Of a stretch of 64,000 bases of DNA, positions 9,440 through 22,543 are shown piece by piece. Location of the stretch: the NCBI GenBank assembly GCA_010909165.1, contig MU008185.1:620001-684000 (forward strand), in the 5' to 3' direction. Both the position numbers and the translations under genes were made by a program. Each line of letters starts with the position of its first letter. Within the stretch, counting starts at the first letter, position 1. The notes under the pieces are model-generated. The model was not told the origin of the DNA and made no database searches. It saw only the letters and a program-made list of their open reading frames with translations. Origin of the DNA: Anthoceros angustus (Eukaryota > Plantae > Anthocerotophyta).

Positions 9440-12400
9440 TTACACCTTCACACAGTTCAAGGTCCTAAGTTGCTTTTCAGCCAGGTCCCTTATCCCATCA
9501 ATGACCTCTCGCTGGCCACTGATCATTTTTCTCACAACCGACTGAGGACGCCACTTCGACGATGTCACCCCGTTCACAACACTAGACTGCAGGACTTGGA
9601 GAACACAACCTGGCAATGGCTGCTTCTCCGCCGCCTCTGTGTTGTTCTGTCTGAGCAGTGATAGCAGTTGTTCCGCTTCCTCCTCCTCATTCCTCTCTAA
9701 AAACTTGGTCAACCATTGACTAAGTGTCTTCAGCTCGTAAGCAAGTGAAGTCTGTGCTTTTTGGAGCACCTGTGAAATGGAGCTAAGTTTCCTGTCTGAG
9801 ATATCCTCACTTGAATTGATGCTGGCAACCCCACCCTTTTTCTTTCTCCTCACAGTTGGTTGCATGTGCTTCCTCCATGATTGCAAGCACAAACCAAGCC
9901 AAGATAACACCTCTGATGTCAAGCTCATGAGCACAGCAACAGCTGGACCAGGGGCAAGAACCTCAGGAGGATGTCCATGGGCAGCTGAGTTTGGCCTTGC
10001 GGTCATGGACTCTAACACCACCTGCAAGGTATACCCAATTGCCCTCATCAAAGTGTCAAAACTATTTTCCAGGCCGTTGTCAGGTCCGTCAGCCTGGGCG
10101 ACTTGGCTTCCAAGTTTCTGTGCAATTGAGAATACTCCAAAACTGAGGACATCAACTGCCCCGATTCCAGACCCTTTGACAAGCGTTCTTTCCTTCACCC
10201 TGTCGGATAGCCAATCATCAACGTTTTCCCATCCTACTCCAAGGATACCAGAGTATTCTTCGAGCAAAAGCCCCAAGTCGTCAGGAACTCGGTTGCTTTC
10301 AGGTGACTCACGTTCTTGCTTTGGTGAAACTGCATTCAAAGACAAGTAAAGTAAACGTGGCAGAATGCCCCTTTTCCTCAGATCTGCTTTCCAGCGCTCT
10401 TCTCTTTTCATCCTCTTGGCCTCACTATCTTCATAGTGCCAGCTAATGTGTTGTCCCAGCAAAGAGGGATCTGCTAGGTAGCACTCATCTGGGGCAGGAC
10501 TCCACCATGGCCGGGTTTGAAGGTCTTCAAGAAATGTCAAAGCTGAAAGCTGTGTCTCAGAGGACAGTCTGTAGGTCTTGCATCCCAAGTCCAACTGTGC
10601 AAGCCTGTCAACCACGCCAGCTACTGTACTTTCTTTTTTCAAAGTGAGAATTGAGTCCTCAATTCTGACCACCACATGGTGGTGGGACTGTTGCAATTTC
10701 TCCTTAAACTGTACAAATTCTAGCACTTTTGAATAAGTGCCATGCCTGTAGGCATGAATAGTAAGATCTCCGGCGTCTGCTTCATGGTCTTTATGGAACT
10801 TAATGGAGTCCTTCAGCACCACCTCCAAGTCTGACCACAGTGGAGAACCCAGAAGATAGTAAAGAATGTGGTGTGAAAGCGTGTCCAGCAAAATGTACTT
10901 GATGTCCAGCGTCTTGTACCATTGCACAGCCGACGACCCAGCAGACAGAAGACAGTACAGATTGGTAACCATGATCTTGTACTGAGAACTGTACTTCCTC
11001 GTTGACAAGCCAAATTCCAGCACAAGGATTGCTTCAATGATGTATGCAACCTCTTGGGTTCGGCGGAACAGCTCAACCAGCATGTTCACCGCCAGTACCA
11101 GCAGCTCCTCTCCGTACATGCTTTCTTTAGGATCTAAGTCCGCCGAAAGGTGCAAGTTATCCACATACAGCTGGGTAATACCAACGGCATGGCCAACAAG
11201 GTCAAGATTAGGACGTTTTGCCTTCACAGCAAGCAGCTCTTCGACTTGATAGGCACCAACCCTCCACCTTAGCAATTTCACCGCATCAATACCTCCCATG
11301 TTGGCACACATCCTTTGCAAAGTACTGGCAAGGCCTTCCTTCTCACTTCCACCTACGTATGGGATGAACCCTCTGACATCAGAGGCAAAGCTCACCATAT
11401 GCCCAAACCTCTCAAAGTACTGTACAAAATTATTGATTAGATCCCGTTCTCCAGCTACAATCCCATCTTCATCACTAAAACGCTGCTTAGACAGCAACCG
11501 CCTTTTAGCAATCTCCAGTTTTGCTAGGTACGGTCCACGTCTCAGATAATCCACTTCCATAGCTAAAAGCTCCTCAATAAATAAATGTACTCCGTTCAGT
11601 CTGCGCTCAACCTCCTCAGGCTTCAAAGCAGTTGGAGTTTCACCATTACACATTAAAGCCCTCGATTCAGAAGTGGCACCGGTCCTGGGTTCCTCCAACG
11701 TGGCAGCGACTAAGCAAAGAAAATCATCCCAGTCATCTGAGCTAAGCTTTAATACCTCCTTGAATACGTCAGCCGCTCGGTCATACTGACAGGACTCCAT
11801 CAGCAAATTCCCCTGCAATCGGAGCTTGTCAGCAGGGATACTGAACAGATTTCCTAGTTTGCCGGAAAGTGTCTCTAGTGCAGCATCAAACTTCCTCTGC
11901 TCCCTAAGAACTGTGAGATACACGAGTAAGGACTCTAAATTCCTCAGTTCGTGTGACTGCAGGCGCTTCTTAATTAAAGCCTCGGCCAGGGGAAGCAGCT
12001 GCGTACTATTACCATTCCCACAGTGAACCTGCAACTGAATGCTGCAAACAGCCCACAAAAGGTATTTCTCCTCCCCCATCATCTTGTACAGTTTGATTGC
12101 CACGTGCTGCTGTTTAATATAAATGTACTCCCGGACATAGCAGTTGAACAAGCAGATCAAAAAGTCAAAATTCTGAGGACTCTTCGAGACGGCATACTCA
12201 TAACAGAGTGTTATCTGGTCCAGTCTATCCAGCCTTTGGTAAACCATCTGCAGCGTGCTCAACGTGAGTTCATCGACAGGGGCACAGTCTTTGGCCTGCT
12301 GACACACAACCAGAGCTTCATCGACTTTACCAATTCTCTCCAAGACCAATGCCTTCAAAGCCAGGAGGTAAGCAGAGCCAGGGTGCTTCGCCAACAGAGC

Positions 12401-12499
12401 AGTGACGAGCTTCAAGGCAGACTTATACTGCCTGGAATCTATTGCATCCCATACAGGTCTCAGCTTTCTTTCAGCTACTCCGTTCTTCGTCCCCGCCAT
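9440..12499 (-). CDS. NAA25: NatB N-terminal acetyltransferase auxiliary subunit (MDM20/NAA25), intronless CDS
   Basis: MAGTKNGVAERKLRPVWDAIDSRQYK, TPR-like N-terminus, RGPYLAKLE, LDIKYILLDTLSH, YSKVLEFVQFKEKL. Confidence 0.95.
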   Translation of the reverse strand: MAGTKNGVAERKLRPVWDAIDSRQYKSALKLVTALLAKHPGSAYLLALKALVLERIGKVDEALVVCQQAKDCAPVDELTLSTLQMVYQRLDRLDQITLCYEYAVSKSPQNFDFLICLFNCYVREYIYIKQQHVAIKLYKMMGEEKYLLWAVCSIQLQVHCGNGNSTQLLPLAEALIKKRLQSHELRNLESLLVYLTVLREQRKFDAALETLSGKLGNLFSIPADKLRLQGNLLMESCQYDRAADVFKEVLKLSSDDWDDFLCLVAATLEEPRTGATSESRALMCNGETPTALKPEEVERRLNGVHLFIEELLAMEVDYLRRGPYLAKLEIAKRRLLSKQRFSDEDGIVAGERDLINNFVQYFERFGHMVSFASDVRGFIPYVGGSEKEGLASTLQRMCANMGGIDAVKLLRWRVGAYQVEELLAVKAKRPNLDLVGHAVGITQLYVDNLHLSADLDPKESMYGEELLVLAVNMLVELFRRTQEVAYIIEAILVLEFGLSTRKYSSQYKIMVTNLYCLLSAGSSAVQWYKTLDIKYILLDTLSHHILYYLLGSPLWSDLEVVLKDSIKFHKDHEADAGDLTIHAYRHGTYSKVLEFVQFKEKLQQSHHHVVVRIEDSILTLKKESTVAGVVDRLAQLDLGCKTYRLSSETQLSALTFLEDLQTRPWWSPAPDECYLADPSLLGQHISWHYEDSEAKRMKREERWKADLRKRGILPRLLYLSLNAVSPKQERESPESNRVPDDLGLLLEEYSGILGVGWENVDDWLSDRVKERTLVKGSGIGAVDVLSFGVFSIAQKLGSQVAQADGPDNGLENSFDTLMRAIGYTLQVVLESMTARPNSAAHGHPPEVLAPGPAVAVLMSLTSEVLSWLGLCLQSWRKHMQPTVRRKKKGGVASINSSEDISDRKLSSISQVLQKAQTSLAYELKTLSQWLTKFLERNEEEEAEQLLSLLRQNNTEAAEKQPLPGCVLQVLQSSVVNGVTSSKWRPQSVVRKMISGQREVIDGIRDLAEKQLRTLNCVKV

Positions 12500-13243
12500 T
12501 ATCATCTCACAATCTAAGCTCAACTGTCTCCTCGCATGCTCATGGAATTTCCTTCCGCTCGACCCATCCAGCCAATTCCAGGACAGAGAGCATCCTCAAA
12601 CCGCTTGAAGTCTCCCCTGCCATGAAGTGTCCCCTCCTTGCCACACCATCTGCCTCACGACCTGATGGCAAGCCATGAGCTGTAGGAAACAGAGTGATGA
12701 GATCCGAACACAGGTGAACCCCTAACCCTAATACAGTAGGTTGTTGCCCTAAATCCAGCTATCTCAATGCGTCATATATATACCCAGTTTGTACATAAAG
12801 TGGTCGGTATCTCCTCGCCGCTGCCTAGTGGTGTAAATAACCTCCAACTCCACTTCAGCTCTGCCGGAGGACGCCCTCGGAGTCGCGGACTCGGTTCATG
12901 AAGACGTTAAACTGAGCTAACAGCTCTCTTTCGTTTTCGATGAGACCGCGTCCGGCTGTCGGTCCTGCCCGTTTTTGTAACTCCTTCTGTATTGTGCCAT
13001 GACGCGATTCTGGGTATCACAGAGTTTTGTCCTGGATGCCGGCTCCGTCAGTCACGGTTGCTGGATAGTAGCTTCGACACATCTGTGGAAGGCTCGCGCC
13101 CGAGATCTTGTCCCTCAGGTTTCGTCTTGCTCCTGTATGTCCAGTTGTCCTCTTTCTTGCATGTACGTCATGTTTGTCACATAGCCTCACGCAACCGCAG
13201 TTTCCGTGAGTCAGGTGATCTGTGGGATTGTGTTGTCATTCAT

Positions 13244-13364
13244 GCTTTACGGGGCGTGGCCGTCTTGTCAAGGTTTGTCAGGAGGACCCGAAAAGTTTAT
13301 TGCTACTCCTACACCAACGCTTCTCTTCTGCTGAGCGGGTGTTGGCCTTTCTAGTCATACATCT
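13244..13364 (+). pseudogene. Degenerate snoRNA copy
   Basis: Retains CTGAGCGGGTGTTGG and ACA-TCT (13359-13364), but hairpin 1 is partly deleted and the guides are mutated. Confidence 0.55.
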
Positions 13365-13449
13365 CAGTGCGACACTAAGCTTTAGGGTTTCTTCTTTCTT
13401 GCTGTGATTTCAGGAGTCGTGTGATGTGAGGTTCTGTGGGGTGATTCGT

Positions 13450-13591
13450 GCTCTTGTCTGCAGAGGCGTTGCTATCTTGTCACTGGTTGCAAGGTTGGTG
13501 TCAGCAGGAGCAGAGAAAAAATAGGGCCACTTTTAAACCTATGCCTGCTATTTTTTGTTGAGCCGGTGTTGACCTGTCTACTGGTACATCT
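13450..13591 (+). ncRNA. Box H/ACA snoRNA copy 1
   Basis: Hairpin, H box (AGAAAA 13514-13519), hairpin, ACA (13586-13588)+3 nt. Both boxes lie 14 nt from the upper stem, and both pockets are complementary to 25S rRNA. Confidence 0.82.
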
Positions 13592-13676
13592 CAGTTTCAA
13601 CGTGGCCTTAAGGTTTATGGATTGTGGTCTTAAGCTCCGTGAGTCATGTGATCTGAGGTGTGGTGCGTTATTCCAT

Positions 13677-13816
13677 GCTCGTGCACAGAGGCGTTGCCAT
13701 CTTGTCACTGGTTGCAAGGTTGGCGTCAGCATGAGCAGATAGAAAATCTTGCCACTTTTAAACCAATGCCCGCTATTTTTTGTTGAGCCGGTGTTGACCT
13801 GTCTACTGGTACATTT
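13677..13816 (+). ncRNA. Box H/ACA snoRNA copy 2
   Basis: Stem GCTCGTGC/GCATGAGC, H box ATAGAA 13739-13744, ACA 13811-13813, pockets intact. Confidence 0.87.
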
Positions 13817-13902
13817 TAGTTTGAAGAAAGGCCTTAAGGTTTATTGATTGTGGTCGTAAGCCCCGTGACTCATGTGATCTGAGGTGTGGTGCGTGATTTC
13901 AT

Positions 13903-14042
13903 GCTCGTGTACAGAGGCGTTGCCATCTTGTCACTGGTTGCAAGGTCGGTGTCAGCATGAGCAGAGAGAAAATAGTGCCACTTTTTAACCAATGCCCGCT
14001 ATTTTTTGTTGAGCCGGTGTTGACCTGTCTACTGGTACATCT
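13903..14042 (+). ncRNA. Box H/ACA snoRNA copy 3
   Basis: H box AGAGAA 13965-13970, ACA 14037-14039, same fold. Confidence 0.85.
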
Positions 14043-14135
14043 CAGTCTCACGGCAAACGTTAGGAGTTCTTCTTCCTGATCTACCGTGCTGATTTCTGTG
14101 AGTTAGGTAGTCGGAGGTGTTATACGTTATTTCGT

Positions 14136-14276
14136 GCTTTTGTACAGAGGCGTTGCCATCTTGTGGAATCTTGCAAGTTTGGTGTCAGCAGAAGCGGACA
14201 GAAATTTAGTGCCAAATTTAAACCAATGCCCGCTATTCTCTGCTGAGCGGTTGTTGACCTGTCTATTGGTATAACT
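14136..14276 (+). ncRNA. Box H/ACA snoRNA copy 4 (AUA variant box)
   Basis: Stem GCTTTTGT/GCAGAAGC (compensatory), H box ACAGAA 14198-14203, ATA 14271-14273. Core guide segments are unchanged despite diverged loops and spacer. Confidence 0.75.
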
Positions 14277-14860
14277 CAATGTCTTACATCCGATATTTTC
14301 CGTTCGCTATGCCAGCGACTCGAACCGCACTTGTCCGGTCCCCAGTGTTCCACCTTGACCAAGCTTCCACGTCCCAGAGGAGTACACCTCAGTTTCTTGC
14401 TTTAGGGTGTCTTGATTTTGGGTGCTGCGCAGAGGCGTCATCACTTGGTCAGACCTGCAACGGGGTGCCGGCTGTAGTGACGATCAAACTCATCCATTCC
14501 CTAACCAGCCTGCCATTTTCCTTGGTGGTCGACCCATTTATGGATGTAGACCCTATTGTCGGGAGAATATGGAGTCCAGTTAGAGTCCTTGTTTCCAACT
14601 TCTTAGGCCCAGGTTACTGGTTGTTCAAAGATCTGGCTTCCCTTGGCTAGGCTATGCTCCAGAGTTTCTGGGACGAAATTCTGTTATTTCTTGTGGTTCG
14701 CTGCTGCTGGAATTCAGTTTTGATCAGGGGCTTGTAGGCAAATGAGAGGGGCAGCCTCTGCCAAATAGGGAGTTGTTCGCTGCTCTAAATGCTGCTGTGG
14801 TGTGGTTTGCATTCAGGTCCTTTGGTGCCATCACTTGTTCATGAGCTTGTGAAGGTTTAG

Positions 14861-16356
<1,496 letters not shown>

Positions 16357-19689: not shown

Positions 19690-22150
19690 AACAACGTCCG
19701 AATGTAGAAGAAATATAGAACACTTCAACAAACACTCAATAGACTCATTAATACATCAGGCGAGGGGCTCCATTTTTGAAGTTGTAAAGAAGGCCTTCAA
19801 GATACTTGTGTTGATTAAGCCACAACAGATAACCTGTCTCTAATAACTTGCAAACCCAGGCAGTAGTAGATCTCTCTAAGATCCTTCATCTCAAAGGCTT
19901 TGGATAAGGTACACTTGATTTCAGTCAACAAACCAAGAGTACTAGCAAATAACATGAGATCGTCCACATAAACTACAACATAAACAAAAGAACCATCCTT
20001 CACAAGCTTGTATATACTGGGGTCAGCCACATTCTACTCAAAACCATTTTGACATAGATAAAGATGAATCAACTGATTCCATTGTTGAGGAGCTTGCTTC
20101 AAGCCATACATAGACTTTTTGAGGCGACACACCAGATGCTCCTGGCTTGGTATAACATAACCCTCGGGCTGTTCCATATAGATCTACTCATCTAAATTGC
20201 TGTAGAAGAAAGCAGTTTTAACATCTATCTAATAAATTTCCTAGTCGTGCTTGGCAACCAATGCAAGAACCGAATAGAGGAAGTCTTAGACACAAGAGCG
20301 AAGGTCTCATTGAAATCAAGGCCTTCAACTTGAGAATACCCTTTAACAACCAACCAAGCCTTGAAATGTTCGATGGATCCATCTGCATGATATATGACCC
20401 TAAAGGTCCACTTACATCCAACAACACAACGGTCAGGAGGAAGAGGTATCAAATCCCAAGTGTTATTGTTGATGAGCAATGCATACTCATAATAAATATT
20501 GCCTCCCATTGCTTCCTATGCGGGGAGTCGAGCGCATCTGTGTATATTTGTGGCTCATCTATCTTATGAATAGTGAGAGTGGAAAGGGAAAATCATTTGT
20601 TTGAAGAGACTCCAAGTACTTGAGAGAGGGAGTCTGCAATCACGTGGACTGTCGGGGCAGCTGAGGGTCATCAATATTATCTTGCATCTACTCAATTTAC
20701 AATTGCTTGGACTGCCGGCGTTTACAATTGCTTGGACTGCCGGGCCGGCCGAGGGTCATTAGTGTCATTTTGCAGCTGCTCCTCATGACCATGAGAGGGA
20801 TCTCCAAGCTCAAGGTTAGCATCGGTACCATACGGCTGCTGAAAATCTTGAGGCTCTACAACGTTGGGATCCACCTCTTGAGATTCCCCCTACGGATCAA
20901 GAGCACTTACAAACCATTGCTCTTTAGATGTATCTTGGTCAAATGATGCAAAGATGTCGGAACTAGTGTCGCCGAAACTCCACACCTCATGTTTGCTGAA
21001 AACCATATCCTGACTTCGATAGACCTTACCAGAAGTAGGATCAAATATTCTATAACCCTTGGACTCGTTACAGTAGCCAACAAAGATGCCTTTAATGCTC
21101 CTTGGGTTAAACTTGGACCAAAGGTGTTGCGGAACCTGAACAAAAGCAACACAACCAAAAACTCTGAAATATGAGTACAATGATACTTGCCCGCTCCATA
21201 GCTCTTCCGGGCATTTTCCGTCTAGTGCATGGGCCTGCATAATCATGATTCAAGACATATGTTGCAGTATCTACAACCTCCACCTAAATCCTCTGCAAAA
21301 GCTTGCTATGAAGGAGCATGCATCTTGCAGTGGAAGTAAGTGATTGTTTCAGTAGCTCAGCAAGACCATTGTGTTGTGGTGAATACGGAAGAGAGAATTG
21401 TCGAGCAATGCCATGTTCTGTACAAAAGTTAACAAACATAGTAGAAGTATAGTCAGTCAAGTTCTCAACCAAAGCTTTAAAACATTTGAATTTATCTAAA
21501 ACCTGAGACTTGCGGTGTAGAAAATATACAAAAGTTTCTCTCAAGAAATCATCAATATTAATAAAAGTAACAAAAAAATTAAAAAAAAACCACGGATGGA
21601 TAGTACCCGCATGGGCCCATAGTCATTAGTATGCACAAGAGCCAATACCTCTTGAGCTTTAAAGATAGACCTTGTACGGAATGGAGTCCTACGATGCTTG
21701 GTAAATACGCAATTCTCACAAAACAAGTCAATGGCAGGCATCTCACGTATACTCCAACAAGTTTTTCGTATCTCACGTATACTCCAACAATTTGTTCGTA
21801 GCTCTAATGGTGAGAACTTGAACATGACCCATGCCAAAGCTGTAATTGCTATTTAGCAAAGTCACCAACGTAATTGGCAAAACTCTTATTAGTGATAAGA
21901 CAATAAAACTTGACCAAGCAACCCCTAGCAATAATATTTTGACATTTCAAATTCTTGATAGAGCAGCTAGTAGAGTCAAAGATGATTTGGTGCCCATGAA
22001 CGGCCAACTTGCTGACTGACAAAAAGTTTCTGGTAAGACCAGACACATAGAGAACCACAGTGAGACGGCATGCACCCTCTGTCAGCATGAGAGGCACATC
22101 TCCAATACCATGAACAAAATTATATGGCGTTGCTAAAGACTTCTCCAATA
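19690..22150 (-). mobile_element. Degenerate Ty1/copia pol (protease, integrase, RT), frameshifted
   Basis: VLYVSGLTRNFLSVSKL, CENCVFTKHRRTPF, PYSPQHNGLAE, FVGYCNESKGYRIFDP, NNTWDLIPLP..GCKW, VVYVDDLM. No LTRs recognised. Confidence 0.93.
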
Positions 22151-22543
22151 AATAATAATTATACTTCTCAAGTCTTGCCTTGCTAATAATAAATAAATGC
22201 ATGCTCATTATCACAACATAAATCAAATTTAGATACTTAGAGTCACTTTCAATGCTATTGAGAAGGTGAAAATACTAGTTGCTCATGACCCTCTACTGTG
22301 ATCTAAGAAATCATGTAAGCGAACATGTGAGCATTCACAATAAAGACACTTACAAGAACTACCAATATCACGATTGAGTCAGTAAAAAAATGAGTGGAAA
22401 ACATGTGCACTAATAATAAAAGATGTTGATAGTGACTTTCACTGTGATGATTAAGAAAGTAAAAACTTAAATGAAAGATGTGAGCCCATAATAAAAACAC
22501 ATTATGAGATGTGGATTTGTGAGAACGTGGAGACAACATGATA

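Follow-up and report, generated by a model that had tools for sequence, protein, structure and literature searches.

Organization of the locus and of the repeat units

We analyzed a 64-kb window of contig MU008185.1 from the hornwort Anthoceros angustus (assembly GCA_010909165.1), and all coordinates below are positions in this window. In this DNA, a gene for an auxiliary subunit of NatB on the minus strand and the RUVBL2 gene on the plus strand are divergent and border a 2.35-kb region. Within this region lies a tandem array (13203–14560, plus strand), which has the same orientation as RUVBL2. The array is considered here as a candidate cluster of genes for box H/ACA small nucleolar RNAs (snoRNAs).

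The array consists of six units with a period of about 226 bp, and each period is made of a candidate snoRNA body and a spacer of about 85 nt. Using Tandem Repeats Finder, we obtained a period of 226 with 2.6 copies and 90% matches at 13461–14050. Gap-free repeat finding extended the family to 4–6 copies at 13203–14451. Two 8-mers recur in the array, both on the plus strand only: AGAGGCGT is found five times (13462, 13687, 13913, 14146 and 14431), and ACCTGTCT is found four times (13572, 13797, 14023 and 14257). Since 226 is not divisible by three, the array is not a coding repeat. Four units are intact and have a length of 141–143 nt: u1 (13449–13591), u2 (13676–13816), u3 (13902–14042) and u4 (14135–14276), the last of which is the most diverged. 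Decayed copies, u0 and u5, are located at both edges.

All four intact units have the same order of elements: a hairpin, an ANANNA box (H box), a second hairpin and an ACA box. The H boxes are AGAAAA in u1 (13514–13519), ATAGAA in u2 (13739–13744), AGAGAA in u3 (13965–13970) and ACAGAA in u4 (14198–14203). They occupy the same alignment columns, and all of them fit the ANANNA consensus. The 3' box, whose position after hairpin II was read from the sequence, is ACA in u1 (13586–13588), u2 (13811–13813) and u3 (14037–14039), and AUA in u4 (ATA in the DNA, 14271–14273). Hairpin I contains a lower stem of 9 pairs, an upper stem of 9 pairs with one bulge, and a loop of 10 nt. Hairpin II contains a lower stem of 5–6 good pairs, an upper stem of 7 + 3 pairs around a 1 × 1 mismatch, and a U-rich loop of 11 nt. 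For 35 hand-placed pairs in the four copies, pairing was standard in 92% of stem cells, versus 34–49% when the 3' partners were slid by 1–3 columns. The distance from the last pair of upper stem I to the H box is 14 nt, and that from upper stem II to ACA or AUA is also 14 nt, in all of u1–u4. In H/ACA RNAs, the target uridine is expected 14–16 nt upstream of the H or ACA box. Thus, both hairpins of u1–u4 have the geometry expected of H/ACA guides.

Each hairpin carries a guide pocket. Pocket 1 has AGAGGCGUU on its 5' side and GUCA on its 3' side; these guides lie at 13462–13470 and 13500–13503 in u1, 13687–13695 and 13725–13728 in u2, 13913–13921 and 13951–13954 in u3, and 14146–14154 and 14184–14187 in u4. 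Pocket 2 has AAAC on its 5' side and ACCUGUCU on its 3' side (13535–13538 and 13572–13579 in u1, 13760–13763 and 13797–13804 in u2, 13986–13989 and 14023–14030 in u3, 14220–14223 and 14257–14264 in u4). In u3, the 5' side of pocket 2 is UAAC (TAAC in the DNA), which forms one pair fewer.

To search for further copies, we used a covariance model, R1, built from the alignment of u1–u4. Beyond these units, it found just two matches in the window, both weak and both on the plus strand. One of them, u0 (13243–13364; 32.5 bits, expectation value (E) 9e-6), has many non-standard pairs: hairpin I is partly deleted, both guides are mutated and both lower stems are broken, and the ACA box is retained. 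In the other, u5 (14423–14551; 17.4 bits, E = 0.03), the H and ACA boxes are gone, and of the guides solely the 5' letters of pocket 1 (14431–14438) are kept, along with a stem similar to that of hairpin II. An initial annotation, made from the letters of this DNA, had described a tandem unit of about 225 bp, the letters of both pockets (including TAAC in the third copy) and the 14-nt box spacing, and our analysis agrees with it on each of these points. It had also placed a module of about 140 nt in every unit; this holds for u1–u4, but not for the decayed u0 and u5.

Conservation of the guides and their predicted target sites in rRNA

We compared the variability of different classes of alignment columns among u1–u4. 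It turned out that none of the 13 guide columns of pocket 1 and only one of the 12 guide columns of pocket 2 vary. Among the remaining columns, 11 of 20 unpaired, 9 of 21 apical-loop and 17 of 69 stem columns are variable. The difference between the guides (1/25) and the other unpaired and loop columns taken together (20/41) is significant (Fisher test, p = 1e-4). Pairwise identity is 79–94% for the snoRNA bodies and 48–86%, mostly about 60%, for the spacers. Of the internal evidence for the importance of the guides, their near-invariance is the strongest.

The targets were examined in eukaryotic ribosomal DNA (rDNA) from metagenomes. We used 119 stretches carrying the conserved sequence of the site predicted for pocket 2 (site 2), three of which were confirmed by Rfam as eukaryotic large-subunit (LSU) ribosomal RNA (rRNA); stretch L024, which derives from a human-gut sample, was excluded. 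Scans for the best site were made on 20 loci that hold the whole LSU or more. Pocket 1 would pair with UGAC-U-G-AACGCCUCU of 25S rRNA (4 + 9 pairs), and pocket 2 would pair with AGACAGGU-U-A-GUUU (8 + 4 pairs). For pocket 2, the best site was the expected one in all 20 loci, with 12 pairs versus at most 10 for the runner-up. For pocket 1, the best site was found 136–155 nt downstream of the pocket-2 uridine in the 13 of the 20 loci that retain the motif, with 11.5–13 pairs versus at most 9.5 for the runner-up. In one rDNA locus of 8.9 kb, the observed complementarity was equalled by 1 of 1000 shuffled guides for pocket 1 and by 7 of 1000 for pocket 2. The motif GAACGCCUCU is located 135–139 nt after the site-2 uridine in nearly all loci. 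The exact target of pocket 1, UGACUGAACGCCUCU, follows this uridine at a distance of 135 nt in one locus, 136 nt in two, 137 nt in 21 and 138 nt in two. In the locus with the 135-nt spacing (L057), the LSU ends 411 nt past the site-2 uridine, versus 410 nt in Arabidopsis. We also observed that in another metagenomic locus the LSU is followed, about 150 nt past its 3' end and in the same orientation, by a linked 5S rRNA gene (L003:600–718).

Both sites coincide with known pseudouridines. U2965 of Arabidopsis 25S rRNA is a mapped pseudouridine, which is equivalent to human U4522 and yeast U2975 (PMC8351944, Supplementary Table 2). U3100 of Arabidopsis 25S rRNA is also a mapped pseudouridine; it is equivalent to human U4659, has no yeast counterpart, and its guide is given as 'nd' in the same table (PMC8351944, Supplementary Table 2). 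In human rRNA, these positions are modified by 98% (Psi4522) and 87% (Psi4659) according to mass spectrometry (PMC6182160). The spacings in the rDNA loci agree with those between 2965 and 3100 in Arabidopsis (135) and between 4522 and 4659 in human (137). These data support the prediction that pocket 2 aims at the uridine of Psi2965 (human 4522, yeast 2975) beside the peptidyl-transferase center. On the basis of the spacing and of the SNORA17 annotation discussed below, rather than of a direct alignment with Arabidopsis or human rRNA, they also support the prediction that pocket 1 aims at the uridine of Psi3100 (human 4659) in helix 97 of domain VI.

The initial annotation had stated that both targets occur in conserved LSU rRNA, and they are indeed unique best matches there. 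Its identification of site 2 with yeast Psi2975 was likewise correct in view of the site equivalence cited above. For site 1, it had proposed a position of about yeast U3111. The place is right, but yeast is unmodified there, and the site is better named Arabidopsis Psi3100 or human Psi4659. According to the text of the 2021 compilation, no snoRNA is known for Arabidopsis U3100 (PMC8351944), and we found no later assignment of its guide in the literature searched. For this conserved domain-VI pseudouridine, left guideless in that compilation, the array thus provides a candidate guide.

Rfam resemblances and the question of function

No Rfam family was found at its gathering score in the window. 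Two H/ACA families gave independent matches below the threshold in the expected register. The plant family snoR137 (RF01433) matches all of u1–u4 on the plus strand in one register. Its scores are 34.3 bits (u2), 30.1 bits (u1), 29.5 bits and 23.9 bits versus a gathering score of 44, with E = 0.0014 in 2.2 kb and, for u2, 1e-4 in a 171-nt search. The alignment is good only in the hinge and the 3' hairpin, where it covers UUAAAC and ACCUGUC of the pocket and GCCA/UGGU of the lower stem. The human family SNORA17 (RF00560) weakly matches hairpin I of u1 alone (17.8 bits versus a gathering score of 29, E = 0.17), and its consensus pocket AGGCxUU...GUCA is aligned with the pocket-1 letters. ACA17/SNORA17 is a guide for 28S U4659 according to snoRNA-LBME-db, as quoted in PMC6010090. 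Since both gathering thresholds are missed, we consider these likenesses as resemblance, not as membership.

A number of observations weigh against the assignment of the array to H/ACA snoRNA genes, beginning with this lack of an Rfam family at gathering score. The canonical fold is 4–7 kcal/mol less stable than the minimum-energy fold, and the fold z-scores are just −0.9 to −1.8. The GGC and GUC letters of pocket 1 are able to pair together; the Rfam consensus structure of SNORA17 draws equivalent GGC/GUC pairs. The initial annotation presupposed guides that stay single-stranded on folding. The unconstrained minimum-energy fold leaves the pockets not fully open and attains the canonical shape in part: u3 gives a two-hairpin fold with a canonical hairpin II, and hairpin I pairs in another register, by which pocket 1 is partly closed. 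One arm of each pocket is short, with 4 pairs (3 in u3); lower stem II is also short, and u4 carries AUA in place of ACA. Two stem changes among the copies are double-sided, both of them in u4 (lower stem I): C-G to U-A and G-U to U-G. Another six are one-sided and lead to wobble pairs. Covariation is not significant, because the two double-sided changes were equalled by 110 of 500 column shuffles, and therefore we do not rely on it as evidence. Finally, the targets are taken from the conserved LSU of eukaryotes other than A. angustus, and an orthologue was not found in the loci of other species examined, namely three Logan contigs and the RUVBL2 loci of Marchantia, Ceratodon and Sphagnum. As to folding, weak z-scores are common among H/ACA RNAs, in which the ribonucleoprotein (RNP) keeps the pockets open; such z-scores are not positive evidence for an H/ACA RNA.

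The lack of an Rfam family above threshold and the folds, which are no more stable than those of shuffled sequences, are what one would see if the array were a plain tandem repeat without RNA function, its snoRNA features and rRNA complementarity having arisen by chance. However, each of the two pockets has a unique best site in rDNA that few shuffled guides equal, both sites are known pseudouridines with the right 14-nt geometry, and the models of two H/ACA families match in register. We consider chance extremely improbable. It is also conceivable that the array is silent and consists of duplicated pseudogenes of a real H/ACA snoRNA, whose working copy is located elsewhere in the genome. The plain decay of the edge copies u0 and u5, the loss of one guide pair in u3, the AUA of u4 and the non-significant covariation are in line with this. 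On the other hand, the guides are near-invariant, in contrast to the strong divergence of the spacers and of the remaining unpaired positions. Such a pattern is not expected under neutral decay. In addition, the stems, the two boxes and their spacing are retained in all of u1–u4, which makes a wholly silent array improbable. Thus, we conclude with a probability of about 0.8 that local amplification on the plus strand has given rise to a cluster of box H/ACA snoRNA genes, with four intact dual-guide copies of about 141 nt and two decayed ones. This judgment is based on sequence, as is our view that at least some of the copies are likely functional.

If expressed, each RNA would assemble with Cbf5/dyskerin, Nop10, Nhp2 and Gar1, as follows from the established H/ACA mechanism. 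Pocket 1 would then present the uridine equivalent to Psi3100/4659, and pocket 2 would present that equivalent to Psi2965/4522/2975, for pseudouridylation.

Possible precursors and comparison with known snoRNAs

The RUVBL2 gene encodes a TIP49-family AAA+ ATPase. Its coding exons (14873–16356, plus strand) show 84–86% identity to land-plant RuvB-like 2 and contain the Pfam domains TIP49 and TIP49_C; in a protein search with exon 1, the best identity was 86%. Its ATG at 14873 is located 313 bp past the end of the array. Several kb downstream of RUVBL2, open reading frames (ORFs) resembling fragments of Ty1/copia integrase and reverse transcriptase were read by eye at 20225–22226 on the minus strand, which suggests a retrotransposon. 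On the other side of the array, the NatB auxiliary-subunit gene (NAA25/MDM20-like; 9440–12523, minus strand) is supported by a match to Pfam NatB_MDM20 with E = 2e-56. This gene is a single uninterrupted ORF of 1027 codons, which is unusual for a plant gene of such size, and it may be intron-poor or a retroposed copy. A putative promoter of the array transcript (12722–12782, plus strand) was read from the sequence. It comprises the telomere-repeat-like element CCCTAACCCTAA at about 12722–12735 and, 50 bp further, a TATA-like run, TATATATA, at 12775, and it would lie about 430 bp upstream of the array. A perfect plant telo-box, AAACCCTA, is located at 13383–13390 on the minus strand in the spacer ahead of u1. 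Telo-boxes and telomere-repeat-like elements are typical of plant promoters of ribosome-biogenesis genes.

The snoRNAs are probably excised from one precursor transcribed in the direction of RUVBL2. This precursor would be either the intron or introns of the RUVBL2 5' leader or an independent polycistronic transcript. In the former case, the snoRNAs would be released from spliced introns. The shared strand, the short distance from the array end to the RUVBL2 ATG, and the TATA run with the telomere-repeat-like element ahead of the array are consistent with it. Splice-like signals are present as well: GTGAGT, the consensus hexamer of a 5' splice site, occurs at 13206, 13639 and 14098, about 37 nt ahead of u0, u2 and u4, and CAG or TAG stands directly after ACA + 3 nt in u0–u3 (13365–13367, 13592–13594, 13817–13819 and 14043–14045). 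The repeat may therefore be read as alternating mini-exons of about 45 nt and snoRNA-bearing introns of about 180 nt, or these signals may be mere repeat inheritance. However, putative acceptors 3 nt past the snoRNA 3' end would place the branch point inside the snoRNA, and u1 and u4 each lack one of the two splice signals. Moreover, the RUVBL2 loci of Marchantia, Ceratodon and Sphagnum (6 kb on each side) contain neither an R1 match nor an Rfam family, and no R1 match was found in three Logan contigs with a RUVBL2-like exon structure (L120–L122). The link between the array and RUVBL2 is not old, since no such RNA is present at these other loci. Overall, we regard production from leader introns as possible, at somewhat below even odds.

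An independent polycistronic unit, processed by endo- and exonucleases, is the commonest arrangement of plant snoRNA genes. Among the new Arabidopsis H/ACA genes of Chen and Wu, most are given as clusters in intergenic regions (PMC2685112). The perfect telo-box ahead of u1 also speaks in favor of such a unit. At the same time, a snRNA-type upstream element was not found near the array, and no significant structure was found in the spacers that could serve as a hairpin site for RNase III. Our confidence in an independent unit is likewise a little short of even. Thus, the inference of the initial annotation is supported as far as a locally amplified snoRNA cluster is concerned, since u1–u4 have the sequence-level features of such genes, and a polycistronic origin is about as likely as one from leader introns of RUVBL2. 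A more far-reaching proposal is that the RUVBL2 leader hosts the array, possibly as mini-exons alternating with snoRNA introns, and that the 5' hairpin is the missing plant guide for the Psi3100-equivalent, related to SNORA17. We consider this combination unlikely. Hosting by the leader, if true, would couple guide production to the snoRNP-assembly ATPase: the guide RNA and the ATPase, which belongs to the R2TP snoRNP-assembly machinery, would come from one transcript. The position of the array next to the gene of a snoRNP-assembly factor is a curiosity.

Plant snoRNA clusters, including those with duplicated members, are familiar, and the array represents a well-supported but ordinary type of gene, which would be overlooked in annotation. 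In the literature searched, we found no papers on hornwort snoRNAs. The array thus adds a well-defined H/ACA gene to the unannotated snoRNA repertoire of hornworts. As in the polycistronic and intronic clusters of Arabidopsis and rice, several snoRNA genes lie close by on one strand and presumably share one precursor. The usual plant cluster, however, combines different, mostly C/D, snoRNAs, whereas the hornwort array repeats a single H/ACA gene at a regular 226-bp period.

The pocket-2 target has guides in other species. In yeast, we take snR42 to be the guide assigned to Psi2975. In Arabidopsis, snoR97-2 was predicted for U2964 by Chen and Wu (PMC2685112) and is credited for U2965 in the 2021 compilation (PMC8351944). 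Both snR42 and snoR97-2, the latter a distinct gene, have the target uridine in common with pocket 2, the comparison being one of target assignments.

The resemblance to snoR137 extends to the pocket and lower-stem letters of the 3' hairpin, the U-rich apical loop, the length (146 versus 141 nt) and the AUA/ACA 3' box. In contrast, the 5' hairpins are unrelated: pocket 1 of Arabidopsis snoR137 is assigned to 18S Psi1208 (PMC2685112), whereas the hornwort pocket 1 aims at 25S rRNA. By listing, snoR137 is a single intergenic gene in Arabidopsis, unlike the tandem array of the hornwort. We also noticed that the 3' pocket of the snoR137 consensus (UUAAAC/ACCUGUC) fits the 25S uridine that corresponds to Arabidopsis U2965, and the only target listed for snoR137 by Chen and Wu is in 18S rRNA (PMC2685112). 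Since this consensus has the same pocket-2 letters, Arabidopsis snoR137 may also serve Psi2965 as an overlooked guide.

SNORA17 resembles the array in the pocket letters of the 5' hairpin and in the position of the H box, and its human target, U4659, is the equivalent of the pocket-1 target. It differs in an unrelated 3' hairpin, and its low score concerns one unit. The SNORA17-like hairpin may reflect either shared ancestry or convergence toward one target. One RNA that unites a SNORA17-like and a snoR137-like hairpin illustrates the evolutionary recombination of H/ACA hairpins.

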